Shown here piece by piece: positions 1-44,281 of a stretch of 64,000 nt of DNA. Location: the NCBI GenBank assembly GCA_965240325.2, contig OZ251245.1:62001-126000 (forward strand), in the 5' to 3' direction. Source of the DNA: Rebecca billardiae RCC1528. Taxonomy: Eukaryota; Protista; Haptophyta. A program made the translations under genes and the position numbers. The notes below the pieces were generated by a model. That model did not search any database and was not told where the DNA came from. It saw only the letters and a program-made list of their open reading frames with translations. The first letter of the stretch is position 1. Each line of letters opens with the position of its first letter.

Positions 1-3000
1 AGTGAGCCGTGTTGCCCGCGTCCGCCGAGAGGAGGAGGACGTGCGGATGCCCGCGCGGGCGCGCGGACTTGCCGTTGCGCTCCGAGCGATCCAGCACGGC
101 GTGCACGGCCTGCGCCCACGGCCGCGCCGCCGACTCGCTGCCGATCATGAGCACGCCCGCGCCCGCGTGCTCGCGATCGCGCTGCGCGACCTCTCGAGAG
201 CCAGCCGCCGGCGGCGGGATCGGGTGGCGGATCGGCTCGCGGCCGAAGCCGCCGCGGAAGACGGTGCGAGCCGAGTGCTCGCCCGTCACCGGGTGGATCT
301 CCTTCCCCACCCACTCGCGCCACGTGTCGAACTGCGCGTCCGTGACGTTCTTCGAGACGAGGTAGCCGGCGACGTCGTGGTGCGTCTGATGAGATTGAAT
401 CTCGCGCACAACGCCCACTGCGCCGCGGCGCTGCTGGAGGTAGGCGTGCCTCGCCCACGGCTTGCGCGAGCCGTCGTCTGCGCCCTCGAGCATCTCGTGC
501 AGCACGAGGTCCATCACGTCGTCGGGCGTGCCACGCAGGATGTGCTCGATATGGTCCGCCTCCCCCCGCCTGCGCTTGCGGCACGCGTTGCTCGAGACCG
601 AGAGAGATGGGCGCTGAGCGCGCTGCCGATGAGCGCCGTCCAGCCCGTTCAGCTCGGCGAGGTGCTCGAACTTGCCGGCGGCTCGGTCGGCGCGCTTGCG
701 CGCGGCGTCCTTGTCGCGCTTGAGCTCGACAAGCTGCGACTGCTGCTCGTCGCAGAGCGACTGGGCGTGCGCGCACTGCTGCTCGAGCAGCTGCTGCGCG
801 TGCAGCGCAGCCGCGAGCTCGTGCTCGACGCCGCTCAGCGCGTCAGCGGCGATGTGCTCGGTCGCGGTGAGGCGGCGCTCCAACTCGAGGGCCCGATCGC
901 GCTGCGCGTCGGCGGCGCGCTGCGCAGCTGCGGCCCGCGCGTTCGCCTCTTCGAGATCGCGCCGAAGCTTCGCCTGCGCCTGCTCCGCCTCGGCGTCGTG
1001 GCGGGTGCGCGCATCCGCGCTGTGCCCGGCGCGGTACCCGGCGAGCACAGCGCGCCTCTCCGCGGCAGCAGCGGCGGCGCGCGCGGCGGCGATCCGGTCG
1101 AGGGCCTCGCGCTCGATGTTCTCGCACTCGAGCTTGACGGCGGCGATCACCACGTCGAGAACCGGCTCGAGATCGACGGCGGCCGAGTTGACGATGTCCT
1201 CGCGCTGCCGCACCGCGTCGTCGCGCTCGCGCTCGAGCTCGCCGTTGAAGTGCTCGAGCTCGGTCACACGTGTGCGCAGCGAGGTGAGCTCGAGCTCGGA
1301 AGGGACGCTGCGCGTGCTGTGCGAGCGCCGCAACTGCTGCTCGAGCTCGGCCACGTGCTACAGCTCGGCCATGCGCCTTCGACCCCGTGCTGTCTGCTCG
1401 TCCGCCTCTGCCTCGGGCGTCGGCGCCACGCTGCCAGCCGAGCGCGTGAGAGGCCGCTGGCGGGTGGGCGCGGCCGAGAGCAGCACGGCAGGCGGCGGCG
1501 ACATGAAGGCGGGCGAGGCGACGGCAGGTGACCTCGGCGGCAGCAGCTCTTCCGCCGACCCACCGACGAACGGCTGCGCCGCCGCGCCAGCGAGGAGGAG
1601 TGGCGGCGCGGGCTGGCGGGAGGCGCTGCGCGTGACCGCGGGCGACGGCGCAGCGGCAGCAGGAAAGCTCAAGGCGGAGGAGGCGTTGGTAGTGGCGGGC
1701 GAGAAGACGAGGTGGTCGGCGTGAGCGGGAAGAGACGAGAAGCGGGCAGCGACGACGGCGGGAGACAAATCGGCGGCGGCGGCGGCGGCTGATGCCGCCG
1801 CCTCGCCGCCATCAGCTCGAAGGAGAGCGAGCGCGCGCGCGGTCGGTGGACGGGCGGCATCATGCGGCGAGGACAGCGGCTGCGGCTGCGGCCGCGGCCG
1901 CGGCCGCGGCCGCGGCTGCGGCGGCTGCACGAGCGGCGGAGGCAGGTGCGGAGGCGCCGACGGCAGCTGCGGCGGTGGCGGAAGCGACGGCAGCGGCGGC
2001 GGCCCCAACGGAGGCAGCGGCTGGGTGTCCGCGACCGCGTAGGGCATCACGGCGGCGGACGATGGATCGGATGGCGCGTCGGCGCAGAGGCCGGGCGTGA
2101 GACCGAGGACTGGAACATGCGAGAGAGGCTGAGAATGAGAATGCAGATGGGCATGCGTGGGATCGAGGGCAGAGAGATCGAGGGGGGGATGCGGCGCGAC
2201 CGCGCCGTCACCAGCTGGCGCGCGACGCCATCGGGCGCTGCTCGCTGCTCGGCGAGTGGCGGTCAGCTGCTCGCGCTGCGCGCGGCGCGCTTTCCAGTCC
2301 GCGCGCTTGCGCCGTGAGACGTCGGACTCGGGCGGCGCCGCCGGTGCCGCCGCGGCGGGCGCCGCGGCAGGCGCTGCCGGCGGCGCGCCCGTGAGCTCCG
2401 ACGGGCCCTTCGTCACAGACGGCGTGCGCCGCCAGCCCCGCCTCCGCCGCGGCGCATCGAGACGCCCTGCGCGCACACCTTGAGCAGCTCGCCGCTCACG
2501 TCAGCGCGCCCCTTCTCCTTCTTGAAGCGCCATGGCTGCATCAGCGCGTAGCGCTCGGCGTCGACGCTCACGCCGCCCTGCGCGTCCTGTGGCGCGTGCA
2601 GGCCGCCCTGCGCGTTGAGCGAGATCACGCCCACGCGCACGTGCGCGAACTGCTGGTACGCGCCGTCCGGATCGAGCCGATGCATCTCGGTGTGCTCGAT
2701 CGAGAGCGAGTGCACCGTGTTGATCGCCGAGAGGTGCCGGTCCGTGCGCGCGCCGCCGAGCGCGTTCGCCCGCAGCGGCTTCGGGACGCGGCGCATGCCC
2801 AGGTTGAGCCACGTCGAGATGCGCTCGGGCTGGTACGAGCTCACGGTGCGCCGCGTGCGGTCCTTCTCTCGCGTCTCGTGCACGACGCCCTGGTCGTCGA
2901 GCGAGGTGAACATCGGCGAGTAGAGGGCGTCACGCGGGAACAGCGCCAGCTTGGCCTTGCGCAGCAGGTTGCCCTTCTTCCGGCTGCCCTTGATGGCGAC

Positions 3001-5182: not shown

Positions 5183-6725
5183 CGTCGGCCGGCGGCGGCG
5201 GCGCGTCGAGCGCGCGCGCGAGCGGCGCGACGCGCTCGGCGACGGCGAGGTCGAAGGCGGCGGCGACGTCGGCGGCGCACCACCTCGGCGCGCGCTTGAG
5301 CGCCAGCCGCACCACCAGCCCGACGAACTGCTCCTCGCTCAGGATGAGGGGCGGCGGCGCGGCGAGCTGCTGCTGCTGCGGCTGCTGCTGCGGCTGCTGC
5401 GGCTGCGGCTGCGCCGCCGCGCCGGCGGCGGCGGCGGCGGCGGCGGGCGGCGGGCTGCGGCCGGCGGCGGGCTCGAGCGGCGCGGGCGGCGCGCACGCGC
5501 GGCGCAGCAGCACGCCGACGTCGCCCTTGCGCAGCCGGCCGCCCAGCAGCCGCGTGTCCGCCACGAACTGCATGCACCCGCCGCGCTCCAGCCCGAGCCT
5601 AGCACCGCCGCCGCCCGCCGCCGCCGCCGGTGTGGGCGGCGCCGGCAGCGTGGCCGGCGTGGGCGGCAGCCGCGCATAGTAGCCGTGCACGCGCTGCAGC
5701 CGGGGCCAGTGCGCGCAGACCGCGGCGCGCAGGGCGCGCTCGTCCGCGCGCGACTTTGCGAGCGCGTGCACCCCCACCGCCGCCCACCACGCGTCACCCG
5801 GGTCGGCGGCGGCGGCGGCGGCCGGCTCGGGCGACGGCGCGGCGGCGGGCGGCGGCGGCCCGGCCGGCGGCGCGCGCGCGCGCGCGGCGCGCAGCGGCGG
5901 CGGCGGCGGCGGCGCGGCGGCGGCGCGCTCGGCGGGCCTCCGCCCGATCGGCGGCAGCGCCACGCCGCCGTCCAGCCCCGCGCCCTCCGCCACGCCCTCG
6001 GGCGGCGCCGCGGCCGCGCGCAGCTCGGTGCGCGCGGCCGCGAGCGCGCGCTCGTAGCCGCGCTGCAGCCGCACGTTGGCGGGGTCGTGCGAGAGGCCGA
6101 GCATGAAGTGGCGGCACGCCTCGAGGGGCATGCCGTGCTCGAAGGCGGTCGTGCCGCGCCGCAGCGCCGTCGCCGCGATGCCCGAGTGCCGCCCGCCCCC
6201 GCCCGCCCCGCCGGCGGCCTGCTGGGCGGCGGCGCCGCCGCCGCCGCCCAGCCGCGCGCGCGAGCGCGCGGCGGCGGGCGGCGAGGGCGAGCCGCCGCTC
6301 GACGCGTCGTCGAGCGGCGCGAGTCGGTGCGCGCCCAGCCCCCGCGGCCGCCCCCCCGTCGCGTGCGTCGGCTGCACGAACACCTCCAGCCCCTCGCGGA
6401 TCGCGTGCCGGTAGTTGCGCCGGTATGCGACGATGGCGTCCGCGTCGAGCGAGCGGAGGGCGGCGGGGGTGGCGGCGGCGAGCGCGGCGAGCGCGCGGGC
6501 CTGCTTCGCCTCGGCCACCTTCTCCTGCTCGCGCCGGCTCGCGGCGCTCACGCTGCCGTGCCCCGCGCTCGGCGGCAGCGCGGACGGCGGGCGCGAGGAC
6601 GAGGCGGGCGAGGCCGGCGAGCGCGGCAGCGGCGAGAGCGCGGCGGTGGAGGAGCGCCGCGAGCCGGCCACGCTGGAGGGCACGTCGAGCCGCGGCAGCC
6701 CGGTCTCCGCCGCCGCCGCCGTCAT
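4092..6725 (-). CDS. Hypothetical protein (877 aa) with a TPR-like motif and C-terminal helical/EF-hand-like segments
   Basis: ATG at 6725 within ORF 4092-8003. TPR-like ALRRGTTAFEHGMPLEACRHFMLGLSHDPANVRLQ; segments CMQFVADTRLL, LSEEQFVGLVVRLA and LALAEWKEALVRLA. Divergent from DGAT2. Confidence 0.65.
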
Positions 6726-7007
6726 GGCGCCTCTCTGCCGGCCGCGCGAAGCAGCCGCGCGCGCGGCGTGTGGGCGTGAGCGCCCAGGCCTGCCCAAGCT
6801 GATGGGCTCAGCTGGTGAGCAGCCTCCGGCTGCTGCTCGGTTCATCAGCCGACGAAAGCGGCAACGTTGCCCGTAGTTGCGTGTAACGAACTGCCGGAGA
6901 ATCAGGGGAGAGAGGGAGAAGCGCGCGACGGCCCTGGAAACCAAAAGAAGACACATCAAAAGCGCGACTGCGCGAGGCGACGAGAAAATCGCGCCGACGG
7001 CCGCACG

Positions 7008-7937
7008 ATGCGCGCGGCGCAGCTCGTCGCGCCGCTCGCCGCGCTCGGCGCGGCGCACGCGCGCGGCTGGCTGGGCTCCGCGCCCGGCGCGCTCGGCGCC
7101 GCGCTGCTCGCCGCGTACCTCTTCTTCTACACCGACGGCGCCGAGCGCACCCCGTCCGCGCGCTACTCGGCGCGCGCGCACCGGCTGTTTGCGGCGTGGA
7201 ACCGCGGCGCGTACGCGCGCATGGGGCTGGGCACGCGCGTGGTGTTCGCCGAGCCGGGCAGCGTGGCGCCGGAGGAGCGGTACATCTTCGCGGTCCACCC
7301 GCACGGCGTCATGTCCTACTGCCACGCCATCCTCTGGCACCACCCGGACTTCTTGGCCGCGTCGCCGCAGGCCACGCGCCGCGCGCTCGCCGCGTCCTCG
7401 CTGTTCGCGCTGCCGCTGTGGCGCGACGTGCTGCTCGCGACGGGCGCGGTGGACGCGTCGCGCGGCGTGGCGCGCGCGTGCCTCCGCGCCGGCCTCTCCC
7501 TCTCCGTCCTCCCCGGCGGCGAGCGCGAGCAGCTCCTCGCCGCGCGCGGGCAGCACACAGTCTGGCTGAGCGCGCGCAGGGGCTTTGTGCGGCTGGCGCT
7601 GTCGCACGGCACGCCGCTCGTGCCGTGCTACTGCTTCGGCGAGACGGAGACGTACGACACGTACGGCTGGGCGCTGCGCGCGCGGCAGTGGCTCGCCTCG
7701 CGCCTCACCGTCGCGCTGCCCCTCTGCTCCGGCCCGAGCGCGCTGCGGCCGCTCCGGCCGCACCCCACGACGCTCACTCTGTGCGTGGGCGCGCCGCTGC
7801 GCGTGCAGCGCGCGCACGAGCCGACGGAGGCGCAGGTGGACGCGCTGCACGCCGCGTACGTGCGCGCGCTGCGCGAGCTCTTCGAGGCGCGCAAGGCCGA
7901 GGCGGGCCACCCGCACGCGCAGCTGCGCGTCGTCTGA
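7008..7937 (+). CDS. DGAT2: Diacylglycerol/monoacylglycerol acyltransferase, DGAT2 family (309 aa, intronless)
   Basis: YIFAVHPHG, LPGGEREQL and RRGFVRLALSHGTPLVPCYCFGE are DGAT2/MGAT signature motifs; hydrophobic N-terminus. Confidence 0.9.
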   Translation: MRAAQLVAPLAALGAAHARGWLGSAPGALGAALLAAYLFFYTDGAERTPSARYSARAHRLFAAWNRGAYARMGLGTRVVFAEPGSVAPEERYIFAVHPHGVMSYCHAILWHHPDFLAASPQATRRALAASSLFALPLWRDVLLATGAVDASRGVARACLRAGLSLSVLPGGEREQLLAARGQHTVWLSARRGFVRLALSHGTPLVPCYCFGETETYDTYGWALRARQWLASRLTVALPLCSGPSALRPLRPHPTTLTLCVGAPLRVQRAHEPTEAQVDALHAAYVRALRELFEARKAEAGHPHAQLRVV

Positions 7938-8243
7938 GTCGGATGACGATGCCCGCGGTGTCGCTGACCGGGCCGCTGTGAGGCCGCCAGCGGCAGCGTG
8001 CACATGCGTGGCTGCTCGAGGGCGCGAAGGAGGCCGGCGCGCGGAGGACTGCGCTCAGGGCAAAGCAGCGCGCGCTGCCGTTGCGCAGCGGCCCGAGCAC
8101 CGCGCATCCTCCGCGGACCGACTCGGCCGGCGCCGCGCCTCACGCCGTGTGCGCCTGTGCGGCCTCACCGCCCTCCAGCATCCGCGCTGCCAGCGAGTGG
8201 CCACGGCCCGTGTCCGTGACTCGGCATCGGCGAGTGAGTCGCG

Positions 8244-8266
8244 TAATATATCATATATATATATAT
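8244..8266. repeat. (TA)n tract between convergent gene 3' ends
   Basis: taatatatcatatatatatatat between the DGAT2 stop (7937) and the 8454 stop. Confidence 0.85.
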
Positions 8267-8453
8267 TGTCACTCACTCGTCAGTCCGAGCGGGACGAGTA
8301 GTAGCAGTCGTGCTGTACGATCGTACCGCCGCGTTCCGCGGGATGTTCGTCATCAAATATATAGATCATATTCGATCGCGCAGTGATGAACATGTCAAAG
8401 CTGATGAGACGGCGGCGCCACCGTCAAAGCAAGCGCAGCTCGGCGGCGCGCCG

Positions 8454-9800
8454 TCAGCACAGCTCGCCGCCCGCGTCGCGCCGCTCGCGCCAGTCGCACG
8501 GCTGCCCGTCGTCCACGCACGCGTACGCGCGGCTCTGCTCGAGGTCGGTGTGGGACGTGCACACGTCGATCACCGCCTCGAGCGCGGCCCACGCCGCGCG
8601 CCCGCCGTCGGTCGGGCCGCAGCGCGCAAAGCGCACGCCGGTGCGCTCGAGCACGCCCCGCGCGATCGGCTCGACGTGCCGCGCACGGTCGGGCGGCGCC
8701 AGCCCGCGCTTCCTCGCGTGCGCCTCCGCGCAGCCCAGCGCCTCGAACGCGCCGAACGGCGTCGTCATCGCGCTCAGCTCCTCCCACGCCGCCTCGCCCA
8801 CCGCGCCGATCGCGAGCGCGCGCGCGTCCACAAACGTGTAGTTCCACTCGGGCCGCATCCAGGCGAAGCGGTAGAAGGCGTCCTCGACGCAGTAGAGCTT
8901 GGTCGCCAGCTTGGTGCGCGTGGCCACCTCGAGCATCGGCACCGCGCGGTAGGCCCTCAGCACGCCCGCCGCCGCGAACGCCGCCACCTCCTCCCGGCGC
9001 CACAGCCAGTGGTAGCTGTGTGTCGGCAGGAAGGAGGCGGCCGAGCCGTTGGCACCGCGCCTGGCCGGCTTGGCCGGGGTGAGGTCGAGGCCGTTGCGCG
9101 CGCCGCGGTGGCGCAGGCCGGGGACGGACGTCTGCGCGACCTTGACCCCCTGCCGCACCAGCCCGTGCGTGATCCACTTGCGCGGGCCCGGCTCGGGCCA
9201 CGGCGAGACGAGCACGTGCCGGCCGCGCCGCTCGTACACGCTCGCCGCGTGGCACAGGTTGTTGCGCAGCACGAGGGACTCGGCGTCGAGCAGGAGGCAC
9301 GAGTGCGCGGGGGTGCTCAGGCAGCCGTACAGCTTCTTCAGGCTCTGCACCCAGTACTTGCTGCTCCCGCTCAGCGCGTCGAGCAGCGCGGGCTCGGGGG
9401 GCGGCGCCGCGCCGCCGCGCGCGAGCGCGTCGTGCAGCGTGCGCACCGCAAAGCGCTCGGCGAGCGCGGCGCCGCGCACGACGCGGCCGAGGCTCCACGG
9501 CGTGCCCGCACCCACCCTGCGCAGCACGCGCTCGAACACCCCGCGCTCCGCCTCGTCCGTCACGACCGTGAGGTGCGACGGCGGCGCAAACGCGCACCGC
9601 GGCTCGGCGGGCTCGGGCAGCGAGCGCGCGATCGACTCGACGAGCCGCGTCCACTCGGGCAGGTGCGGGCGGTGGCACGGCGTCACGACGGCGAGCTGCG
9701 GGAGCGGCGCCGCGCGCCGCGCGGCGCAGCACAGGAGCGCCGCCAGCGCGCGCCGGAAGCGGAGCGCGCGCCGGGCGGCGCTGCTGGCGTGATGCGCCAT
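8454..9800 (-). CDS. Secretory-pathway GT-A-like (glycosyltransferase-like, DUF6492-type) protein, 448 aa
   Basis: Hydrophobic leader ALAALLCCAA; LAVVTPCHRPH, LTVVTDE, YWVQSLKKLYG and LLLDAE (DxD-like) motifs; Cys-rich C-terminus. Confidence 0.6.
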   Translation of the reverse strand: MAHHASSAARRALRFRRALAALLCCAARRAAPLPQLAVVTPCHRPHLPEWTRLVESIARSLPEPAEPRCAFAPPSHLTVVTDEAERGVFERVLRRVGAGTPWSLGRVVRGAALAERFAVRTLHDALARGGAAPPPEPALLDALSGSSKYWVQSLKKLYGCLSTPAHSCLLLDAESLVLRNNLCHAASVYERRGRHVLVSPWPEPGPRKWITHGLVRQGVKVAQTSVPGLRHRGARNGLDLTPAKPARRGANGSAASFLPTHSYHWLWRREEVAAFAAAGVLRAYRAVPMLEVATRTKLATKLYCVEDAFYRFAWMRPEWNYTFVDARALAIGAVGEAAWEELSAMTTPFGAFEALGCAEAHARKRGLAPPDRARHVEPIARGVLERTGVRFARCGPTDGGRAAWAALEAVIDVCTSHTDLEQSRAYACVDDGQPCDWRERRDAGGELC

Positions 9801-13330: not shown

Positions 13331-16096
13331 CTAGCCGCTCGACGGCACGACCGGCGCGAGGCAGTCGCGCCGCCCGCGGCCGCCGGCGGCGCCGGCGGCG
13401 CCGCCGCCCTCGCCCTCCGCCGCCGCCGCCGCCGCGGGCGGCGCGTCCGCGGCGGCGCGGCGCGCGGCGCTTCGCGTGAGCAGCACGCCCGAGCGCGCGC
13501 GGCGCAGCGCGGCGTGCCAGTGCGCGCTCGCGCCCGCGTCGGCGGCGTGCTCGAGCACGTCGGAGCTCTGCGCGCGCTGCTGCGCGCCGGCGAGCCCAAA
13601 GCGCGCGACCACGCGCCGCTGCGTCGAGTGCGCGCCCGCCTCGTGCCGCCGGCGCGCCGCCTCCTCCTCGGCGAGCTTGCGCGCCTTGAGCGCGCCGATG
13701 GTCTCCGCCAGCTCGGGGTGCGTGCGCTGCAGCCCCGCCCACGCGTCCGCGTACAGCACCATCAGCTTCACGTAGTCCGACGCCTCGACCGAGGCGGAGG
13801 TGGGCGCGCCTTCGAGCAGCGAGCGCTCTCCGAAGAAGTCGCCCTGCCCGAGCCGCGCGACCACCTCCGAGCCCGCCAGCACGTTCATGTGGCCCTCGGT
13901 GATGAGGAAGAGGCCGGGCGCGGCGCTCGCGCCCTGCTCGATCACGCGCTCGCCCGGCAGCACGATCAGCTGCTTCATGTGCGCGATGATGGTGCACACC
14001 GTCGCGGTGGGCAGCGCTCTGAACAGCTCAATCTGCGTGAAGAGCCGTCGCTGCAGGCTGATCAGCACCTGCAGCCGCAGCGCGGACGGCAGCTCGCGCA
14101 GCAGCCACTGCTCGTCGTCCGAGCGGCTGTGCGTCCACGTGTACTCGGCGTACGAGAGGACCTGCCGCGAGACGGAGGGCGGCGTGCGCTTCTGGTGCAG
14201 GAACGAGCGCAGCCGGTCGATCCGCTGCCGCACCTGCGCCTGCGCAGCGTCCATGTTGCACAACGCGCTCGAGGCCGAGCCGATCACCGCCGCGGTCGCA
14301 AACACGCCGATCACGGTGACCACCGCGTTGAACAGCGCCTCGTGCCAGCCGTGCGGCTCGAAGTGGACGGGCGCGCCGCCCGACATCGACGCGACCGCCC
14401 AGAAGTAGGCGAACGAGTACTGCGCAGTGCACAGCGCGCAGTGCGCAGCGCGCAGCGCGCGCGCGCGTGGCGGGCGGGCGGGCGGGGCGCGGGCGCGTGT
14501 CGTCACGCGCACACGGGCGCGCGCGTGCACGCATGGCGCGCCCCAGGCCACCCCCGCGGCGCAGGGCGTGAGGGCGTCGGCGCGCCAGCCCCCCACGCCC
14601 GCACCTGGTCGAGGAAGAGCGCCACCCGGCTCATCGCCTCGAGGTCGCGCGGCCGCCCGAACGCGTCGTCGGCCATCAGCAGCGGCACGCCGCCCTCGGA
14701 CACGTCCGCCTTGAAGAAGCGCACCGCGTACCTGGGGGCAGAGAGGGCGCGGTGGCGGTGGGAGGCGTAGCGGGCAGTCAGCGCGCGCGCGGGCGCCCTC
14801 AGGACGAGCGCCCACACCGCGCACCGCGCGCGCGCGCGCCGTGCGCGTGCGGCTGACCACACGCAGCCGAGCCAATGCCACATGAAGAGCAGCAGCATCA
14901 CGAGGCGGCCCAGCCGCAGCACAGCCGGGTCGGTCATGGTGAGGTGCGCCTCGAGGCCCTTCAGCGCGCGGCTGGCGCGCAGCAGCCGGACCAGCTTCAC
15001 CACGCGGATCGCGCGCAGCACGCGGTTGAGCCGCGCCGCGCCGTCGCCGCCCGCGCCCTCGGCTGCGCCGCCCGCCGCGCCCTGCCGCGCGGCCAGCAGC
15101 AGGTCAAAGGGGAACGTCGAGAGAACGTCGAGCACGAACCAGCCGCGGAGGTAGTGCGCCGCGATCGGGCGCAGCGAGAGCACCACCGACTGCGCCATCG
15201 ACGTCGGGTCCACGTGCCTGCGGCGGGCGCGCGCCGCGGCGGGGAGGGGGGCAGGGCGCGCGCGCGGTTGGGCGGCGCGCGCGGCCGACCGCGCACGGCG
15301 CGCGCGCCGACGGGCGTCGCCGCGCACCGCGTGCGCGCGCGCGCCCCAGCCCCAGTGGGCCACACCTGTAGCCCGAGACGAAGCTGAGCAGAATGTCCAG
15401 CCCAAAGTACACGTCCACCACGCGGTCGGCGATCGTCTGCGGGGCGCGCGCGGCGGGAGGGCGGGGCAGGCCGCGTCAGAGCCGCGCGCCGCGCCAAGCG
15501 CAGCCGCAGCCGCAGCCGCAGCCGCAGCCGCAGCCGCAGCCGCGGCCGCGCGTGCGCCCACCAGCGGGAAGAGCACGTCCGGGTACTCGGCGCCGAACGC
15601 GAGGCGCACGGGCACGGTGATCGACGAGACGAGCACGGCGAGCACCATCGCCCCGTCCCAGTAGCTCCGGACCTTGGAGTCCGGGTGGATCACCACGGCC
15701 GCCTCGCACGACCGCAGCGCGCGCGCGCACGCGCCTCCGCCGCCCTGCGCGTCGCCCCAGCCGCCGCCGCCGCCGCGCTGGCTCGCGTCGGTCGCGCCGC
15801 CCAGCGACGCCAGCCCGCTTGCGCGGCGCGAGATCAGCGGCGTGCGCGGCAGCACGCTGCTCCCGCCCCGCGCGCCGCTGCCGCCCGCCGGCGCCACGCC
15901 GTCCGCGCCCGCCGCGCCCACCGCGGCACCGCCCAGCTTGGCGCGCTCACGCTCGATGGCGGCGAGCAGCGCGTTGAGCTCCTTGTTCGACTTGAGCGCC
16001 TCGCCGACCTTGTCGCTCGTGATGACCGTCGAGCGCCTCGGCGCGCCCCGCCCCTCGCCCGCCACGCCCACGCCCTCCGCGCCCTCGCCCCCAAAC

Positions 16097-36919: not shown

Positions 36920-37843
36920 CTACGACCGGGCGATGCTGACGTTATCGGTCGTCGATCCGACGTCGCCCCGGTTGGCGAGGGGACGCCGGGGCAGCGGGCA
37001 GTCCGCCATCGCGCGCGGCGGCGCCCCCGGCCCGGGGCAGCAGCTGGCGTACGCGGCGCAGCCCAGCGCCCACTCGCCCAGCGCGGAGGCGCGGTTTGTG
37101 TCGCTGCACTCGCCCTGCTGCGCGGCGCCGCGCAGGGGGGCCCAGCCGCACGGCGCGTCGTCGGGCGTGCCCGCGCACGTGGCGTTGTACGTGACGCCCG
37201 GCAGCGCCGTCGCGTACATCGGCGTGCCCGAGAAGGCGCACGCCTGCCACAGCGCGCGCTGGTTCCCGTAGTGCAGCGTGCCGAGCAAGCTGAGCAGCAG
37301 CGGCGGCGCGCCGGCGGCGGGCGTCTCGGCGACGGCGACCGAGCGCGCGTACTGGTCGTAGTAGCCGCCCATGCGCGCGAGGAGGTACTCCACCGGCCCG
37401 AGGTTCGCCACGGTGATCTGCTCGGTGTACAGCCCGACCACCTTGACGCCCAGCTCGCGCGCGCGCAGCACAAGGGCCGCGTGCTGCTCGGCGCACGGGT
37501 AGCCGTGGGTCGTGTTCAGGTACATGGCGACGAGCTCCGGCCTGGTGGCGGGCGGCGTGCGGTGGAAGAACTCCATGAAGAGCACCGCCGGCCGCGGGCG
37601 CAGCTCGCCGATCTCCGCCGCGAGCTGTGCGGAGATGGCGCACTCCTCGTGGTCCTCGCCCACAAACAGGCTGGGCGACTGCGCCCACGCGGCCTGCAGC
37701 GGGGAGCGGCGCGGGGCGGCGGCGGCGCCGGGCGCGGCCGCCAGGGCGGGGGTGCGGCTGACGCCGAGGAGCAGCGCGAGCGCGGCGGCCAGCGCGCCTG
37801 CCGCCATGAGGAAGAGGGCCGCGGACGGCCGCGCCGACGCCAT
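36920..37843 (-). CDS. Signal-anchored TIKI/EreA/ChaN-fold (RRSP/PMT-C2-like) hydrolase candidate, 307 aa
   Basis: N-terminal TM/signal; LFVGEDH, VLFMEF, LVLRARELGVKVVGL, LARM and LSLLGTLH occur in the canonical order; Cys-rich C-terminus. Confidence 0.65.
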   Translation of the reverse strand: MASARPSAALFLMAAGALAAALALLLGVSRTPALAAAPGAAAAPRRSPLQAAWAQSPSLFVGEDHEECAISAQLAAEIGELRPRPAVLFMEFFHRTPPATRPELVAMYLNTTHGYPCAEQHAALVLRARELGVKVVGLYTEQITVANLGPVEYLLARMGGYYDQYARSVAVAETPAAGAPPLLLSLLGTLHYGNQRALWQACAFSGTPMYATALPGVTYNATCAGTPDDAPCGWAPLRGAAQQGECSDTNRASALGEWALGCAAYASCCPGPGAPPRAMADCPLPRRPLANRGDVGSTTDNVSIARS

Positions 37844-38118
37844 CTTGAGGACCCGTCTTTCCTTGACAGCGAATGAAAAGCCGCCGAATAAAACGCGGAA
37901 AATGCATGCAATAGGATGGACGCGCGATCAATCATTGTCAGCGCCCAGCGCCAGCACTGGTTCGACCCGACTGTGCGGGCTGGCCCTCTCGAGCGCGCGA
38001 ATGCGATGCGATCCCGCGAAGCCACATTCTCTCGGAACTACTCCTGCGGGCTGATGCTGCGTGGCGACTACGGTTGGCGCTCCGCCAGTAGTGCTCGGCA
38101 TCAGTGACGACAGTAGCG

Positions 38119-41100
38119 TCAGTAGCCCCGGCCGCCACCGCAGCTGCTGATGCCGCCGTGCTGGTGTGCGCAGGCCCCGCCAGAGACGCTCGGGCGGCCG
38201 TCATCCTGCTCAATGCCGATGGCTCCGTCCGCACTGCCGCGGCGACTTCCCTCCACATCCGCGCCGTCGCCAGCGGCGACGGCGGGGTCGAGGCTGCTGC
38301 TGGGGCGACCACCGCCAACCGTGCCGCGCGACAGCCGCGCGCGCGCGCTCGGCGCCGCGGCGGCGGAGCGCTCCGGCGGCCGGAGCCGGCTGCTCTGGGG
38401 CGTGCTCCTCCGGAGGCTCATGCGCCGGCTGCTGGGCACGGAGGACGCCTCGGAGGCGGATGAGCTGGTGTAGGAGTCAGAGACGCTGGGCGACGCCTGT
38501 GACGCCTTGGCCCACGCCTCGCCGGCCGCGCCGTGCGACGCGACAGGGGTGATGCGCGCGCCGTTGCCGGCCGCGCGGACAACGGGGCTCAGGCCGCGAA
38601 GGCCGCCCGCGTAGCACGTGCGCGGCGCTGGGCGGAGCGGCGCCTCGGGCGCGGCAGCGCCCGGCACGCCGCCGCCAGAGGGGCCAGGGGCCGCCTCCGC
38701 GCCCGGTGGAACAGGCGATGCGCGCCCGGCAGCGGCCGCCAGCCCGCGCGCGGCGGCGGCGTGCGCTCTCGGCGGGTCCGGTCCGCGGCCCGGCTCAGGC
38801 GAGCAGCGCCGGCCCACCTTTTGCGACGCGCGCTCGGCCAGCAGCCGGCTCGGCTTGAAGAGCAGGACGCTGTCGGGCGAGCGGCTTGGCTGCCGCTGGG
38901 CGGGTGGCTCGTGCGCGCCGCCGCCAGCCGCGACACCGAGGCCAACCGTGGCGGCCCTGGGGCGCTCGAGCCGCTGAGGCTGCAGATGCGCCGCGCCCGC
39001 CGCGTCGCACGCGGCTGAGCTGCGCTCGCGGCTGAGCGCCGGCAAGCCGCTTGCGTTTGGCGATGGCAGCGGCGAGGTGCGCGGCCGGGAGACGCGCCCG
39101 CGCGCAGCCAGCGGCGCGCCGTCCCGCCTCGGCGTGATCGGCGTCGTCGGCGTCTCCCGGCGCGCGCCGAGGAAGGCGAACATGCCGCTGCCGTGTCGGC
39201 TCTGCCGCGCAGCCGGCGGCGCCGGCCGCGCGCGCCAGCTTGCGAGTGTGAGTGCGTGCAGCAGCGCCGCGCGCACCTCGGCGTTGAACGCGTCGAGGGC
39301 GGCGGCGCTGACCGCGTGGTGGCCCGCGCTCGGCGACGACGCGCCGGAGCGGAGGCTGGAGCCGCCGCCCGAGAAGGAGTCCTGCTGCTCGCCGCGCGCG
39401 CCGCTGTGCGCGCGCGCGCTCGTCGCGCCCGCGCGCTCGCTGCGCGCGCGGCCGCTGCTCAGCCGCTCGCGCAGCCCGTCGCTCAGCCGGCCCAGCGCGC
39501 GCCCGAGCTCGGCGCTGCGCAGCCGGCGGAAGCTGAAGCGGCCGTGGCCCAGAGGCGTCCACCGCGTGGCCGCGCCGAACGCCGCGCCGATCAGCTTGAA
39601 GATCGACGCGCGGTCGGACGCGACGCTCGCCCTGGCCGTGCGGCAGTCGAAGGACGAGAGCGTCTGGAGCACGCGCGCACCGTCGTGGTCGAGCGCGGCG
39701 AGGAAGGCGGCGAGCTCGGACGGCAGCGCGAGCTGCAGCTCGACGTGGCGGTGGAGGCGGCACTGCACCACCTCGTACAGGCACCACACGCGGCTCAGCG
39801 AGACCGCCGCGTCCCACGGGTCGAGCACGAGCACCATCCTGCCCACCTTGGCGATCACACTGCCAATGTGCCGGATGCCGGCCTGCACGTCGTGCTGCCG
39901 GATGGTCGCGAGGTCGAGCCAGAGGTACAGCCCGGACTCGTCGAGTCCGGTGGAGGCGGCGTGCAGCCGGACGGCGCTGAGCAGCTTGCGGAACGGGCAC
40001 GCCTGCGCGTGGCTCACGAAGAGCGTGGCGCGGCCGACCGCGCGCGTGCCGTCGGCGAGCACCAGCCCCTCGCCCGCCTCGGCGAGCGATTTGCCGCTCG
40101 ACTGCGTGAGCGCCGCCACCAGCCGGCCCACCTCTGCGGACGTCGTGTCCGCGCCGATGCTGTGCCGCTCGCACAGCTCCTCGAGGAAGCGGAGCTGCAC
40201 GCCGAGGAGGAGGTGGGCGAGCTCGGCCTCGGGAGGCTCGTCGTGCGCGTGGCCCATCGCGGCCAGCGCGCCGACCACGCGCGAGACGCGCCCGGGCAGC
40301 TGCGGGCGGCGAGCCGCGCGCGCGGCGCGCGCCGCGCGCGCAGCGCTCCCGCGCCGCGCCGCCACGGCCGCGTGCGCGCGCGCGAGCGCGTCGCTGGACT
40401 CGACGATCCGATGCGGTAGCCCCAAGCGGCTGGCGAGGAGAGTGCCCCACCCTGCTTCGGCCCCATCGCCGGCCGCGGCCACGGCCGCCGGCTGCGCTCC
40501 GGCCGACGCGCCGACGGCCGACTCGTCGCGCGTGCCGAGCAGCGCGCCGAGCGCGCGCGCCGCGCGCGTGCGGAGGCCCCGCGCCGGGCTGCAGCAGCCG
40601 ACGAAGGCGCTGATCTGGACGGTGGAGATGGCGTTGGCGAGCTCGGCGTGCGCCGAGAAGACGAGCACGCACGGCCACGCGCGCACGAACGCCCACGGGA
40701 ACGCCATGCCGACCGCGGCCTGCGCCAGGCACAGGATGAGCGTGAGCCTCACGCCCCACGAGAGCGCGCGCACGAGGAGCGCCGGCGCAGCGCCGAGCGC
40801 GCGGCGGACGAGGCGGTCGACTTGGCACGCGGCGGTGGTGACGACGAGCGGCGGGAGGCTGAGCGCGGCCAGCAGCACCAGCTGCGAGTTCACCCGCGGC
40901 GCCCGCTCGCCCAGCGCGCGGATCACCTCCGACGCGACGACGAGCGCGCCGAGCGCGAGCGCGGAAGCCCGCAGCGCGCGCCGGTAGCGCGGCAGCGTGA
41001 CGCGCATCGAGACCAGCCCGGCGTTGGCGGCGGCCTGCGCGGCGAAGGCGAGGAAGAGCGTGGTAGCGACGCTGCCCAGCAACGCCGGCACGAGCAGCAG

Positions 41101-41913
41101 CCGCAGCCCCGTCTCGTAGTCGTACCAGCGCAGCCAGAAGAAGGGGTTGAGCTGCGCGGCCGCGCGCAGCGCGTTGGCGACCAGCTCGAGCAGCAGCGTG
41201 CTCTGCGCGACGTTGGCGCGCGCGCGGCGCGCGTCGCGGGCGAGGCGGGCGAGGCCGCGCGCCGAGCGCGCGGCGTTGTACAGCGCGTGCAGCCCGACGA
41301 GCCCGGCCAGGCACGCCGGCGCCGGGTGCGCCCACATCGCGTCCCACGGCGTGCGCGACGGCGTGAAGCGCGCTCGGACGGACGCGTCCGCGCCGCGCGC
41401 GCGCGGCGGCTGCAGCAGGTGGGCGATGAGCGGCAGCGCGGCGCGCTGGTTGAGGTCGAAGGCGGGGGGCTGCGCGAGGGCGCGCGTGTCGCCCGGGCGG
41501 CTCCAGTACTTGTGCCCGCCCGGCTCGCGCCCGAGCCCACCGGTCGCGCGGAGGTCGATGACCGCCCAGCCGAGCGCGCCGAGTGCGCCCGCGCCGCGCG
41601 CGTGCTGCTCGTAGCTGCAGCGCTCGTACGTGGGGTTGAGGTGCACGACGATGGCGCCGCGCAGATCGCGCAGGCCCACGTACCGCGGCGGGCACTCGTC
41701 GTACGCCCACTCGTCCGGCGCCGTCGCGAGCAGCGGCGCGTCCACGTCGAAGGCGTCGGGCGAGAAGCGCAGTGCGCCCGCAATCAGCTCGAGGCCGCGC
41801 AGGCGCGCCGGGCCGTCGGTGACGAGGAGGTGCGCGGCGGCGGCGCGGAGGAGGAGGGCGAGCGGGAGGAGCGTGGTGGCGCGCCCGCGCGGCGGCGCGC
41901 TCCGGGTGCCCAT
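38119..41913 (-). CDS. Signal peptide + PA domain + 7TM + TIR/HET-like domain receptor (1264 aa, intronless)
   Basis: Leader TLLPLALLLRAAAA; PA-like C...DLRGAIVVH...RCSYEQHARGAGALGALGWAVID; seven hydrophobic helices (~41330-40600); cytosolic ATLFVSHAQ, LWLDLATIRQHD, RMVLVLDPW, LSRVWCLYE, ARASVASDRASIF; disordered Ser/Arg tail. Confidence 0.8.
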   Translation of the reverse strand: MGTRSAPPRGRATTLLPLALLLRAAAAHLLVTDGPARLRGLELIAGALRFSPDAFDVDAPLLATAPDEWAYDECPPRYVGLRDLRGAIVVHLNPTYERCSYEQHARGAGALGALGWAVIDLRATGGLGREPGGHKYWSRPGDTRALAQPPAFDLNQRAALPLIAHLLQPPRARGADASVRARFTPSRTPWDAMWAHPAPACLAGLVGLHALYNAARSARGLARLARDARRARANVAQSTLLLELVANALRAAAQLNPFFWLRWYDYETGLRLLLVPALLGSVATTLFLAFAAQAAANAGLVSMRVTLPRYRRALRASALALGALVVASEVIRALGERAPRVNSQLVLLAALSLPPLVVTTAACQVDRLVRRALGAAPALLVRALSWGVRLTLILCLAQAAVGMAFPWAFVRAWPCVLVFSAHAELANAISTVQISAFVGCCSPARGLRTRAARALGALLGTRDESAVGASAGAQPAAVAAAGDGAEAGWGTLLASRLGLPHRIVESSDALARAHAAVAARRGSAARAARAARAARRPQLPGRVSRVVGALAAMGHAHDEPPEAELAHLLLGVQLRFLEELCERHSIGADTTSAEVGRLVAALTQSSGKSLAEAGEGLVLADGTRAVGRATLFVSHAQACPFRKLLSAVRLHAASTGLDESGLYLWLDLATIRQHDVQAGIRHIGSVIAKVGRMVLVLDPWDAAVSLSRVWCLYEVVQCRLHRHVELQLALPSELAAFLAALDHDGARVLQTLSSFDCRTARASVASDRASIFKLIGAAFGAATRWTPLGHGRFSFRRLRSAELGRALGRLSDGLRERLSSGRARSERAGATSARAHSGARGEQQDSFSGGGSSLRSGASSPSAGHHAVSAAALDAFNAEVRAALLHALTLASWRARPAPPAARQSRHGSGMFAFLGARRETPTTPITPRRDGAPLAARGRVSRPRTSPLPSPNASGLPALSRERSSAACDAAGAAHLQPQRLERPRAATVGLGVAAGGGAHEPPAQRQPSRSPDSVLLFKPSRLLAERASQKVGRRCSPEPGRGPDPPRAHAAAARGLAAAAGRASPVPPGAEAAPGPSGGGVPGAAAPEAPLRPAPRTCYAGGLRGLSPVVRAAGNGARITPVASHGAAGEAWAKASQASPSVSDSYTSSSASEASSVPSSRRMSLRRSTPQSSRLRPPERSAAAAPSARARLSRGTVGGGRPSSSLDPAVAAGDGADVEGSRRGSADGAIGIEQDDGRPSVSGGACAHQHGGISSCGGGRGY

Positions 41914-42410
41914 GGCGTTGTTGCGCGCGTGCGGGTGGCGAGGGCGAACGGCGGGGGAGGAGGGCGAACGTCGCTCGCTCACAGAATGATTCTCAGGGAG
42001 GTCGTTGGTGTGCAAAATACCGCTCGGGGTAGGCGCGAACTACCCACCTAGGCTACTTGTTTCTTTTTGTACCATCTCGGAGCAATCTGAGTGGCTAGAA
42101 ACGAGCGCGAAGCTTTTCAGACGAGCTTTCTTACATGTGCGATTGTGGTTGTAGCGTCTCATTAGCGGCTTGATGCCCTCGTCGGATTTTCCGTCGTACG
42201 AACGTCGATTGGATCTCACACAAACCAACAGACAGCCCCCCGATTCCCCAAGCGGCGGCAATCGAACACCGACTGTTATGCAATAGCACACGGGCGCTCA
42301 CGTTTTGCCTGCTTACCGGAACGACACTTACTCCCAAATTCCCCTCACACAAACCAAGATTCCTACTACGGTACCACCGGAAGCTGCGCGGGCCACCCAG
42401 CGCGCAAAGC

Positions 42411-44281
42411 TCACTTGCGCTTGCCGCCGCCCTTCTTGCCGCGCGCGGACCCCTTGCCGCCCTTGCCCTTCCCGCCGCCCTTCTGCCGCTTGGCCGCCGC
42501 CTTCTCGCCGCGCTTGTCGGCCAGCATGCGCTTGTCCACGCGCTTCACGCGGCCGGTGCCCGCGCCCTTGGGGCCGCCCGACTTGGCCGCAGCAACGGCG
42601 CTGCGCCCGCTGCGCCCGGTGACGACGATCTTCGCCGAGGGCCGCTTCTTGCCCAGCTTGCCGCCGCCCTTCGAGTAGAGCTTCTCGATCGCCGTCGCCT
42701 TCTCGCGCTCGGACATGTCCTCCTTGCCCACAATCGCGTTGGCTTGCTTCTTGAGCTGCGGCGTGTGCGCGCGCGCAGCGGCGCAGCGGCGTGTGCGCAG
42801 CGGGGGCCACGGGCGGAGGGCAGGTGCGGGTGTGAGCTGGCGTACGCGGTGTGCGCGGCGTGCGCGCACCGCCACCGGGCGGGGGCATGCAGCCGCGGCC
42901 GCGCGCGCGCGCAGCCGGGGCGTGGCGCCTCCGCGCGCGTCCGTCTAACCGCGCGCGCGCACGTGGCGCGTGGGGCGCACGTGGCGCATCGGCGCGTACC
43001 TTCTCGATGACCTTGGCCGTGCGCCGCTTCTTGCGCGCCTTGGCCTCGGCGACCTTGCCGATCGTGCGCGCGTCGATCGCCTTGAGCCCCTCCGCGGCCG
43101 CGCTCAGCGCCGCCGCGTCCGCCAGCTGCAGCCCCGCCGCCGTGTGCCGCACGCGCCGCTCGTCGTCTGCAAACCATTCGGGCAGCTCTGCGCGCGGCGC
43201 CGGGCCGGCGGGTGGGCGGGGTGAGGGGCGGGGTGAGGGCGGGGTGCCGCGCGGCGGCGCACGGCCCGCGCCCTCCCCACCGCGAGCTCGCAGCGGACGT
43301 GGCGGTGGCGGTGCGCGGTGCGCGGTGCGCGGTGCCGGCTGCGACAGGCGGCGGGCGACAGGCAGTGGGCGGCTGCGGCGTGGCGCGCGGCGCGGCGCGC
43401 GGCGCGGCGCGGCGTGGCGCGCGGCGCGGCGCGCACCCTTGTCCGCCCACGCGTTGCGGTTGTAGGCGCTGTCCTCGAGATCGCGGCGGGAGCGCTTGCG
43501 GATCAGCATCTGGCCGAGGGCGATGCGCTCGGCCTCGCGCTCCACGCGCGCCTGCTGCGCGCGGTGCCTGCTGCCGCCGTACACTGCGCGCGCGCCGCGC
43601 CGCGCCGGCCAGCGCGCGCGCCGCGCTCAGCCGCGCGCCGCGGGCCGCGCGGCGCGCGCCTCTCGACGGCGTGTGGCGCGCCGCGGCGCGCAAGGGGGGT
43701 TGCACGGCGCGCGCGGCGGCGGCGGCGGCGGGCGCGCGCACCCGTGCCCACGCGCTCGAGGTCGTCCTCCCCGTCCTCCTCCTCCGCGCCGCCAATCTCC
43801 GCCGCGCCCGTCGCGACGGCGCGCGCGGCCGCGCGCGCGCGCGCCGCCGCGCCCTCGCGCGCCGCGCCGTTAGCCGCGCGCTCGGCGGCGGCCGGGGCGG
43901 CGCGGCCGCGCGCGCTCGCGGCCGCGCCGCCGGGCGAGGGCTTGGCGCGCTTGCCGCGCGGCGGCGGATCCTCCTCCTCCTCCTCCTCCTCCTCCTCTGT
44001 CGCGTCGCCGTCCGTCTCGCCGCCCTCCTCCTCCTCCTCCTCCTCCTCCTCCTCCTCCGCCTCCGAGTCCGCGCCCGCGGCCGCGGCCGCGCCGCCGCCG
44101 CCGCCGCCGCGCGCGCGCTTGGCGCCGCCCGCGCCGCCGCCGCGGTCCGCCTCGACCTGCGCCATGAGCGGCAGCGAGAACCACGCGTCGGCGTGGCCGC
44201 GCTCGTCGCCCTCCTCCTCGCCCTCCTCCTCCTCCTCCGCGCCCGCCTTCGCCCCCGTCTTCAGCAGCGGGTTGGCCACGC

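Follow-up and report, generated by a model that had tools for sequence, protein, structure and literature searches.

A seven-helix receptor gene with a PA-like ectodomain and a TIR/HET-like cytosolic module in the haptophyte Rebecca billardiae

Known receptors and enzymes of comparable design

TIR domains constitute a common enzymatic core of immune and cell-death signaling in bacteria, plants and animals, and fungal HET domains kill cells when overexpressed. Every TIR enzyme that has been tested requires its catalytic glutamate and self-association (PMC10022894); HET domains span 220–240 residues and have no known biochemical activity (PMC12881547). Among receptors, the GPCR-bigrams of oomycetes and protists (GPCR-PIPK, -AC, -PDE, -INPP and -TKL) join a 7TM region to a C-terminal, putatively catalytic domain (PMC6033456).

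The gene described here is encoded in a window of 64,000 nucleotides (the whole stretch of DNA that was analysed) from R. billardiae RCC1528. Its product combines a PA-like ectodomain, a seven-helix bundle and a TIR/HET-like module, an architecture that is conserved as a family, with the folds of its parts modeled. With Toll-like and IL-1 receptors it shares the logic of an extracellular binder anchored in the membrane and linked to a TIR-family domain in the cytosol; these receptors, however, have one helix, an LRR or Ig ectodomain and an adaptor TIR, whereas in the present protein a PA-like ectodomain is combined with a seven-helix GPCR fold and an enzyme-type W-x-x-x-E motif. Like the GPCR-bigrams, it carries an N-terminal 7TM region and a C-terminal, catalytic-type cytosolic domain in one polypeptide, a likeness of architecture; unlike them it adds a PA ectodomain, and TIR/HET is not among the accessory domains in PMC6033456. 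The ectodomain fold (by Foldseek) and the pattern ...GAIVV...C..E..A..AGA... are shared with PA-domain receptors (ZNRF3/RNF43, the apical domain of the transferrin receptor TfR, vacuolar sorting receptors), but those are single-pass or soluble, whereas the PA-like domain of the present protein lies ahead of a 7TM bundle and falls short of the Pfam PA threshold. The initial annotation, made from the sequence alone, did not recognize this architecture as described, and the literature searched on HET/TIR in algae, GPCR-TIR and 7TM-TIR yielded no paper reporting a PA-7TM-TIR/HET fusion.

Gene structure and the receptor half

The locus is best read as one genuine gene whose product is a membrane receptor of several domains. 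It consists of one minus-strand ORF with its ATG at 41913 and its stop codon at 38119–38121, encoding 1264 amino acids (Table 1). Its upstream neighbor is the 3' end of a Spb1-like gene; on the downstream side the next ORF begins at 37843. The window has a GC content of about 75%, and 28 ORFs of at least 100 codons overlap the receptor region when all frames are counted. Long ORFs are common by chance at such GC values, yet the receptor frame is the coding frame, as indicated by GC at the three codon positions (GC1/GC2/GC3 of 0.77/0.63/0.94) and by domain homologues with E-values down to 5e-47. GC3 amounts to 0.96–1.0 from residue 17 to about residue 866, codon periodicity is lowest at residues ~471–505, and homology is unbroken in a single frame from residue ~14 to ~893. 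The ORF proved intact on translation, and the motifs FVSHA, WLD..IRQH, LVLDPW (residues 695–700) and RVWCLYE all lie where the initial annotation had placed them. Contigs from a public sequencing run (low share) were short and identical to the window.

Table 1. Features of the receptor gene, with coordinates in the window
Feature	Residues	Coordinates	Strand	Basis or remarks
Complete ORF, PA-7TM-TIR/HET-like receptor gene	1-1264	38119..41913	(-)	1264 codons + stop; codon periodicity
Predicted signal peptide (core TTLLPLALLL, then AAA|H)	1-27	41833..41913	(-)	Hydropathy; homologues start alike (alignment A2)
PA/apical-like ectodomain	28-195	41329..41832	(-)	Alignment A2, model, Foldseek
Seven-helix GPCR-fold membrane core + helix 8	198-458	40540..41322	(-)	Helices 198-227, 235-253, 266-296, 308-335, 343-372, 378-409, 412-441, 443-458
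Ala/Arg-rich low-complexity linker	459-564	40222..40539	(-)	Translation
TIR/HET-like module	565-784	39562..40221	(-)	N-terminal helical sub-domain, then flavodoxin-like core; model pLDDT 91.7
FVSHA, betaA motif	632-636	40006..40020	(-)	Family consensus FVSHAW; Phe, His nearly invariant
WLDLATIRQH, betaB + BB-loop start	665-674	39892..39921	(-)	Family consensus WxDxFxxxQH; Asp nearly invariant
RVWCLYE, start of alphaC	708-714	39772..39792	(-)	Glu codon 39772-39774
Low-complexity insertion, ~88 aa	785-872	39298..39561	(-)	Between domain core and final conserved helix
Conserved terminal helix LDAFNAEVRAALLHALTLASW	873-893	39235..39297	(-)	Consensus FNxxVRxAL...L..SW
Lineage-specific Ala/Ser/Pro/Arg/Gly-rich tail	894-1264	38122..39234	(-)	No counterpart in 750-890-aa relatives

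The signal peptide, PA-like ectodomain and seven helices read in the initial annotation find support in hydropathy, in a 22-sequence alignment (A2) and in an AlphaFold2 model of the N-terminal half (pLDDT 86, and above 90 across the ectodomain) which displays a PA-like and a GPCR fold. The ectodomain contains the conserved motifs CPPxY, GAIVV and CSxE..ARGA...GA, and Foldseek matched it to the TfR apical domain and the PA ectodomain of ZNRF3 (E 7e-3 to 1e-2; TM-score by target ~0.6). Pfam gave no PA match on the window protein, and in the paralogue P0010 PA (PF02225) scored 20.3 bits, short of its cut-off of 23.9. In a structure atlas, a shape search with the 470-residue N-terminal model retrieved only PA-containing M28 peptidases (TM ~0.4), and a feature search with residues 1–905 gave weak leads only (no higher than 0.80).

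The membrane core, as modeled, has the arrangement of a GPCR, with seven predicted membrane helices, the N-terminus outside and the C-terminus inside; its Arg-rich loops are on the cytosolic side. It resembles GPCR classes A, C and F and LYCHOS about equally (a tie within about 2 Z units). No Pfam 7tm match to a named GPCR family was obtained with either the window protein or P0010, and the sequence yielded neither G-protein nor GPCR motifs. An SPPL2-type intramembrane protease, which likewise combines a PA domain with a multi-pass region, was rejected as a candidate on the basis of a bundle that matches GPCRs, a translation in which no GxGD motif was seen and the lack of a Peptidase_A22 match.

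The length of the linker differs among homologues (alignment A2), and at the site of the low-complexity insertion homologues have just ~10–25 residues; an unspliced intron at residues 785–872 was rejected in view of a GC3 of 0.98–1.0. Of the homologues examined, those of the same architecture and the short ones have the terminal helix, and many of them stop right behind it. In the tail the coding signal is weaker (GC3 0.72–0.92); the Diacronema paralogue P0151 likewise has a tail.

The cytosolic module, its family and its relation to TIR and HET

The module belongs to a eukaryotic domain family for which there is no Pfam model. Relatives were gathered by an exhaustive HMMER search, which gave 2381 matches at E≤1e-3; a limit of E≤1e-10 leaves 429. 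Word-index searches yielded little (one already known member with the domain alignment A1, nothing at E≤1e-3 with the N-terminal 470 residues), probably because the Ala/Arg-rich composition saturates the candidate list. A homologous N-terminal PA-7TM module (E 1e-11 to 1e-48) occurs in 21 of the best 150 domain matches. The fusion recurs in at least 21 clusters of proteins, among them Diacronema lutheri, which has several copies; three of the relatives are single unbroken ORFs on multi-gene or independent contigs. TPR arrays accompany the domain in 9 of 9 soluble relatives tested, in line with the statement in the initial annotation that the domain usually sits N-terminal to such arrays in soluble proteins. 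Receptor-linked domains form one clade (SH-aLRT 96), and TPR-linked domains fall in a separate clade. A second membrane-fused group (P0040, P0056 and others) showed no relation to the 7TM module (hhalign E 0.48).

Trp710 and Glu714 (also numbered W151 and E155) are invariant in 65 of 65 aligned family members, at a mean column identity of 26%. Near-invariant residues are F, H, D, P, P, R, C and D, and the conserved residues sit at the C-termini of strands betaA, betaB and betaC or just past them. Against a bona fide TIR profile (hhalign E 9e-4), FVSHA, WxD, the betaC strand and RxWxxxE match column by column: FVSHA aligns with FISHA(W/S) of PdTIR and AbTIR, WLDLATIRQH with VWYDEF of bacterial TIR, and RVWCLYE with R-G-W-P-E-Y-E, Trp710 and Glu714 falling on the W and the second E. 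The last Glu of the profile motif aligns with E208 of AbTIR if chain 7uwg_A carries a 3-residue tag, as the numbering assumes, and E208 is the catalytic residue of that enzyme (PMC10022894). The cytosolic TIR/HET-like domain claimed in the initial annotation thus has an invariant Glu aligned to the catalytic Glu of TIR enzymes. As to the fold, the AlphaFold model has a flavodoxin-like core and its top structural neighbors are TIR domains, but the scores are modest and Pfam thresholds for TIR and HET were missed.

Enzymatic TIRs (SARM1, plant TNL and TIR-only proteins, AbTir, PdTIR, ThsB) share with the module its modeled core and the order of the motifs, i.e., F-x-S-H in betaA, W-x-D in betaB, a hydrophobic betaC and R-x-W-x-x-x-E at the start of alphaC. 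The module differs from them in its length (~240 residues vs. ~140–160, or 80–100 residues more than a canonical TIR), in a conserved helical sub-domain at the N-terminus and in additional helices at the C-terminus. Its similarity scores are weak, and the Pfam thresholds for TIR and TIR_2 are not reached. Pfam gave no match to the window protein at E≤10, whether to TIR (PF01582), TIR_2 (PF13676) or HET (PF06985). In the family the only recurrent matches were HET (in 8 of the 65 members, with a best E of 2.9e-4) and TIR_2 (4 of 65, best E 0.032), all sub-threshold, in addition to ThsB_TIR in 1 of 65. PdTIR was the sole PDB match of the family profile, and a phmmer search of the PDB with a 61-residue betaC-alphaC piece returned chance matches only (ODAD4, bL32m).

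These observations are best explained by a receptor whose cytosolic domain is a TIR-type enzyme activated by clustering, a reading to which we assign a probability of roughly 0.5. NADase activity, activation by clustering, sensor-effector coupling and a part in immunity or cell death are what we infer. We regard it as unlikely that the domain instead acts as a non-enzymatic, homotypic adaptor which recruits soluble proteins with the same domain (e.g., the domain-TPR proteins) to relay the signal. The best VIA matches do include MyD88, MAL, IL-1RAcP, TRAM and TRIF, the family is very large and its many TPR-bearing soluble members are possible partners; however, the constancy of Trp and Glu in W-x-x-x-E over 65 sequences so divergent favors catalysis over an interaction surface, and the separation of receptor-linked from TPR-linked domains into different clades also speaks against recruitment.

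Similarly doubtful is a HET-type death domain with non-TIR chemistry, comparable to that of fungal HET or of a nucleoside 2-deoxyribosyltransferase or nucleotide hydrolase, acting on a substrate other than NAD+. Nucleoside 2-deoxyribosyltransferases score nearly as high as TIRs in the structure comparison, and fungal HET resembles the module in its size (a core of ~220 residues plus the terminal helix) and in the pairing with repeat sensors (TPR in this family; WD40, TPR or ANK in fungi). The sub-threshold matches center on the W-x-D...Q block, which in relatives aligns with Pfam HET positions ~36–91 and is the middle one of three ordered conserved HET blocks, the last ending in a conserved Glu; the first and last blocks may likewise correspond to motifs of the module. 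On the other hand, no family member tested reached the gathering score of HET (22.5 bits; P0088 scored 16.2 and P0006 14.7) or that of TIR_2, the family is algal and protist whereas HET is fungal, and fusion of HET to a 7TM receptor is not described in the literature found. Moreover, the column-by-column match is to TIR catalytic motifs and, since HET is held to be a distant TIR relative (PMC10197012), this alternative overlaps with an enzymatic TIR-type domain.

A gene-model artefact, in which the ORF overstates the gene at 75% GC and the real transcript is spliced, shorter or split into two products, is highly improbable: codon periodicity is weak around the linker dip noted above and in some stretches of the tail past residue ~970, and the ORF continues for 370 codons where relatives stop soon after the SW helix, but the two modules share one reading frame along which homology is unbroken, high GC3 (0.96–1.0) extends over both of them and the insertion, the fusion recurs in the clusters and independent unbroken ORFs already described, and the neighboring genes leave no space for a second promoter-gene unit.

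Proposed mechanism and biological meaning

In a receptor with an enzymatic TIR-type domain, the PA-like ectodomain would face the outside or a lumen and the GPCR-fold bundle would span the membrane, followed by a flexible linker, the ~240-residue TIR/HET-superfamily domain in the cytosol and a long disordered tail. The Trp710-x-x-x-Glu714 pair may cleave NAD+ or a related nucleotide, and the domain would be activated only on clustering of several copies, as in other enzymatic TIRs. Binding of a ligand to the PA/7TM part could drive or rearrange dimers or oligomers and so activate the cytosolic domains with no G protein involved. The receptor would then either generate a signal derived from a nucleotide or deplete NAD+, with growth arrest or cell death as the result. 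Such a protein would be a seven-helix counterpart to the Toll-like receptor idea in which the TIR is an enzyme rather than an adaptor. It is a more tentative proposal that this is a one-component immune or death receptor of the algal surface, in which a PA-headed GPCR fold switches NAD+ cleavage by a TIR/HET domain through clustering and without a G protein, and that the same family ties fungal HET to TIR across eukaryotes.

The family would represent a large branch of the TIR/HET superfamily in algae and protists that has a catalytic-type Trp/Glu pair, lacks a Pfam model and is joined to TPR sensors or, in the window protein, to a seven-helix receptor that has its binding domain on the outside. 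Haptophytes matter ecologically, and virus-linked cell death occurs among them. If the domain is active, this protein would be, to our knowledge, the first receptor of GPCR fold to drive an enzyme of the TIR type directly, haptophytes would gain a candidate surface receptor for death or immunity, and a tractable soluble domain would become available for probing HET-like function. If the domain is inactive, the protein would still add a new receptor architecture to the catalogues of protist signaling.

Coding status and surroundings of the receptor gene

With a G+C content of ~75% the window contains long open reading frames (ORFs) as a consequence in all frames, 28 of them of at least 100 aa overlapping the 37-43 kb region. 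Among these the minus-strand ORF of 1264 aa is the coding frame: G+C per codon position is 0.77/0.63/0.94 over its whole length and third-position G+C (GC3) is 0.96-1.0 between aa 17 and ~866. The initial annotation had described a single ORF joining a PA-like domain, seven transmembrane helices (7TM) and a TIR/HET-like domain, an observation confirmed by translation, codon periodicity and motif positions; its four motifs (FVSHA, WLD..IRQH, LVLDPW and RVWCLYE) all occur where it had placed them, with the Glu codon of RVWCLYE at 39772-39774. At 40400-40500 (aa ~471-505), in an Ala/Gly-rich linker, GC3 falls to 0.76-0.80 and no longer exceeds both other codon positions; this is the sole such dip within the conserved part of the ORF and could be a composition effect or a small in-frame intron.

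In relatives, an extra conserved helix (FNxxVRxAL...L..SW) lies 10-25 residues past the core of the C-terminal domain, and many of these proteins terminate there. In the receptor protein, core and helix are separated by an 88-residue low-complexity insertion which, with a GC3 of 0.98-1.0, looks coding and not intronic. The helix is followed by a low-complexity tail of 370 residues with a weaker coding signal (GC3 0.72-0.92) and no in-frame stop.

The gene is bounded by neighbours on both sides (see the table of features). An Spb1-like rRNA methyltransferase gene has its 3' end upstream, on the same strand, about 500 bp from the receptor gene start; the two ORFs found there are probably the last exons of one Spb1/FtsJ3-like gene, separated by an intron or a frame change. 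The downstream ORF has a hydrophobic N-terminus and gave nothing at E<=0.01 in a Pfam scan. A few contigs (151-243 bases, low depth) of X1, a public 2024 sequencing run of organism A, are identical to parts of the receptor gene (window 37900-42200), so the sample contains the same organism or one very close to it; the X1 contig over 39852-39986 has 13 mismatches to the window and may be derived from a paralogue.

Features of the receptor gene, its protein, its neighbours and two relatives
Feature	Position	Strand	Remarks
Receptor ORF	ATG at 41913 to stop 38119-38121	minus	1264 aa
Beta-rich domain	aa 29-195		AlphaFold2 model
Seven helices	aa 198-227, 235-253, 266-296, 308-335, 343-372, 378-409, 412-441		AlphaFold2 model
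Short helix 8	after helix 412-441		AlphaFold2 model
Conserved terminal helix	aa 873-893		match to FNxxVRxAL...L..SW
Spb1 C-terminal domain ORFs	42331-43584 and 42414-42875	both minus	Spb1_C, E 5e-20 and 5e-15; overlapping, different frames
Downstream ORF	36920-37843	minus	307 aa; start 37843; ~275 bp gap to receptor gene
Diacronema lutheri copies	JAGTXO010000051.1 (L001), 6001-9457 and 14047-15000		tandem or near-tandem

The C-terminal TIR/HET-like module

An exhaustive HMMER search of representative proteins with aa 554-824 as query recovered a family of 2381 proteins at E<=1e-3, or 429 at E<=1e-10. Aligning 65 members (mean column identity 26%) gave the consensus FVSHAW ... WxDxFxxxQH ... 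LVLxPWxxPxxLxRxWCLxE. All 65 have the Trp and Glu of the last motif, and F, H, D, P, P, R, C and one later D are nearly invariant. In the AlphaFold2 model of the module (pLDDT 91.7, pTM 0.88) a helical sub-domain at the N-terminus precedes an alpha/beta core, with the conserved motifs at or just past the C-terminal ends of strands.

The TIR/HET-like fold proposed from the sequence stands in part. It is favoured by the alpha/beta core and by a Foldseek list made up almost wholly of TIR domains (RPPT-TIR at E 0.02, RPP1, SNC1, RPS4, MAL, AbTir, SARM1, ThsB), whereas no solved structure is a strong match and the only recurrent Pfam families among the 65 members, HET (8/65, best E 2.9e-4) and TIR_2 (4/65, best E 0.032), are all under curated thresholds. 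The sole PDB sequence match of the family profile is PdTIR (E 0.21), with FVSHAW aligned to FISHAW. The receptor protein itself has no Pfam match anywhere along its length and by curated thresholds falls outside TIR, TIR_2, HET and PA.

Residues were compared with a profile of bona fide TIR domains built from a DUF1883-TIR protein (Methylobacterium plasmid) and relatives annotated PF01582/PF13676. The hhalign alignment extends from betaA to alphaC (E 9e-4, although the very narrow template profile keeps the probability at 22%) and pairs FVSHA with FISHA, WLD with WYD, VLVLD with VVVLS and R-V-W-C-L-Y-E with R-G-W-P-E-Y-E. The TIR profile in turn matches AbTIR at E 1e-57, where the motif columns read D-W-T-N-Y-E and correspond to W204 and E208 (chain 7uwg_A count, a three-residue tag being assumed). 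E208 is the catalytic glutamate of AbTIR, and all enzymatic TIRs tested require that residue and self-association (PMC10022894). The module is placed in the TIR/HET superfamily, with its catalytic-type Trp/Glu pair intact. SARM1 (W638/E642) and plant TIRs (WCxxE) share the W-x-x-x-E pattern.

Two of the main rival explanations concern what this module does. For an adaptor-type TIR speak the adaptor TIRs among its best structural matches; against this reading is the strict invariance of Trp and Glu, which hints at catalysis rather than an interaction surface. If it were instead a death domain of the HET kind acting by other chemistry, it would fit the HET matches, all under curated thresholds; the aligned motif columns point to TIR domains. 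Reviews of 2023 and 2025 describe neither a structure nor a biochemical activity as established for HET (PMC10197012, PMC12881547).

The N-terminal half and the fusion in relatives

Among the top 150 relatives found with the C-terminal domain, 21 also match over the N-terminal 450 residues (phmmer E 1e-11 to 1e-48). The resulting 22-sequence alignment displays a hydrophobic leader, a conserved ectodomain with typical PA-domain motifs (CPPxY, GAIVV, CSxE..ARGA...GA) and seven hydrophobic segments. Modelled by AlphaFold2 on this alignment (pLDDT 86.3), the ectodomain matched the transferrin-receptor apical domain and the ZNRF3 PA ectodomain in Foldseek (E ~1e-2, TM by target ~0.6) and the helix bundle matched GPCRs (MRGPRX1 at E 1.2e-3); motifs, model and matches together support the PA-like ectodomain and seven-helix core of the initial annotation, as predicted PA-like and GPCR folds. 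Arg-rich loops follow helices 1, 3, 5 and 7 and, with the signal peptide and the conserved ectodomain cysteines, fit an N-out, C-in topology, so that the C-terminal module would be cytosolic.

With clustering at 50% identity, the PA-7TM-domain order recurs in 21 or more clusters. A flawed receptor gene model is the remaining main rival; the weaker coding signal of the tail is to be set beside three relatives that each read as one unbroken ORF on an independent contig (64% to 74% G+C), two of the three with neighbouring genes. Sequence comparison supports a real fusion and the three-part architecture, encoded in one coding ORF, is conserved.

In Diacronema lutheri four or more copies are annotated, some of them arranged in tandem, and UniRef gives two of them the name 'Heterokaryon incompatibility domain-containing protein'. 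The C-terminal third of a 1115-aa receptor is 96.5% identical to a 317-aa gene lying 4.6 kb further downstream, and KFE25_009422/009423 are two further paralogues in adjacent genes, which suggests local duplication. In a quick, provisional maximum-likelihood tree, 10 of 10 receptor-linked domains group in a single clade (SH-aLRT 96), together with short proteins that are possibly fragments; TPR-linked domains make up the other half of the tree.

The association with TPR arrays in soluble proteins given in the initial annotation was borne out, TPR_10/TPR_12 arrays following the domain in 9 of 9 long soluble relatives tested. Atlas shape searches matched the whole 240-residue module (TM 0.76-0.85) to clusters whose labels are for the most part oomycete, chlorophyte, haptophyte and ciliate; members of two clusters (TM 0.79-0.81), which have no taxa on record, carry methyltransferase (Ubie_methyltran, Methyltransf_11) or DUF285 domains. 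In the relatives coded P0040, P0056, P0062, P0079, P0112, P0113 and P0123 (~575-640 aa) the domain follows a different multi-pass N-terminus of 3-6 predicted helices without a PA domain. No relation between these N-termini and the PA-7TM module was detected by hhalign, and fusions of the domain with membrane modules thus seem to have arisen more than once.

Related receptors and predicted function

The receptor protein is related to two known kinds, TIR-family receptors and GPCR fusions. Its logic is similar to that of Toll-like receptors, and it is built like a GPCR-bigram. The partners listed for GPCR-bigrams are PIPK, INPP, AC, PDE, TKL and aspartic protease (PMC6033456). A GPCR-TIR or 7TM-TIR fusion was not mentioned in the literature searched. 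The initial interpretation, a GPCR-like sensor coupled directly to an NAD+-cleaving or nucleotide-signal effector, is partly supported. In such a receptor the module would be switched on by receptor-driven clustering and would cleave NAD+ or a related nucleotide, and its output, a nucleotide signal or NAD+ depletion, may serve in defence or cell death.
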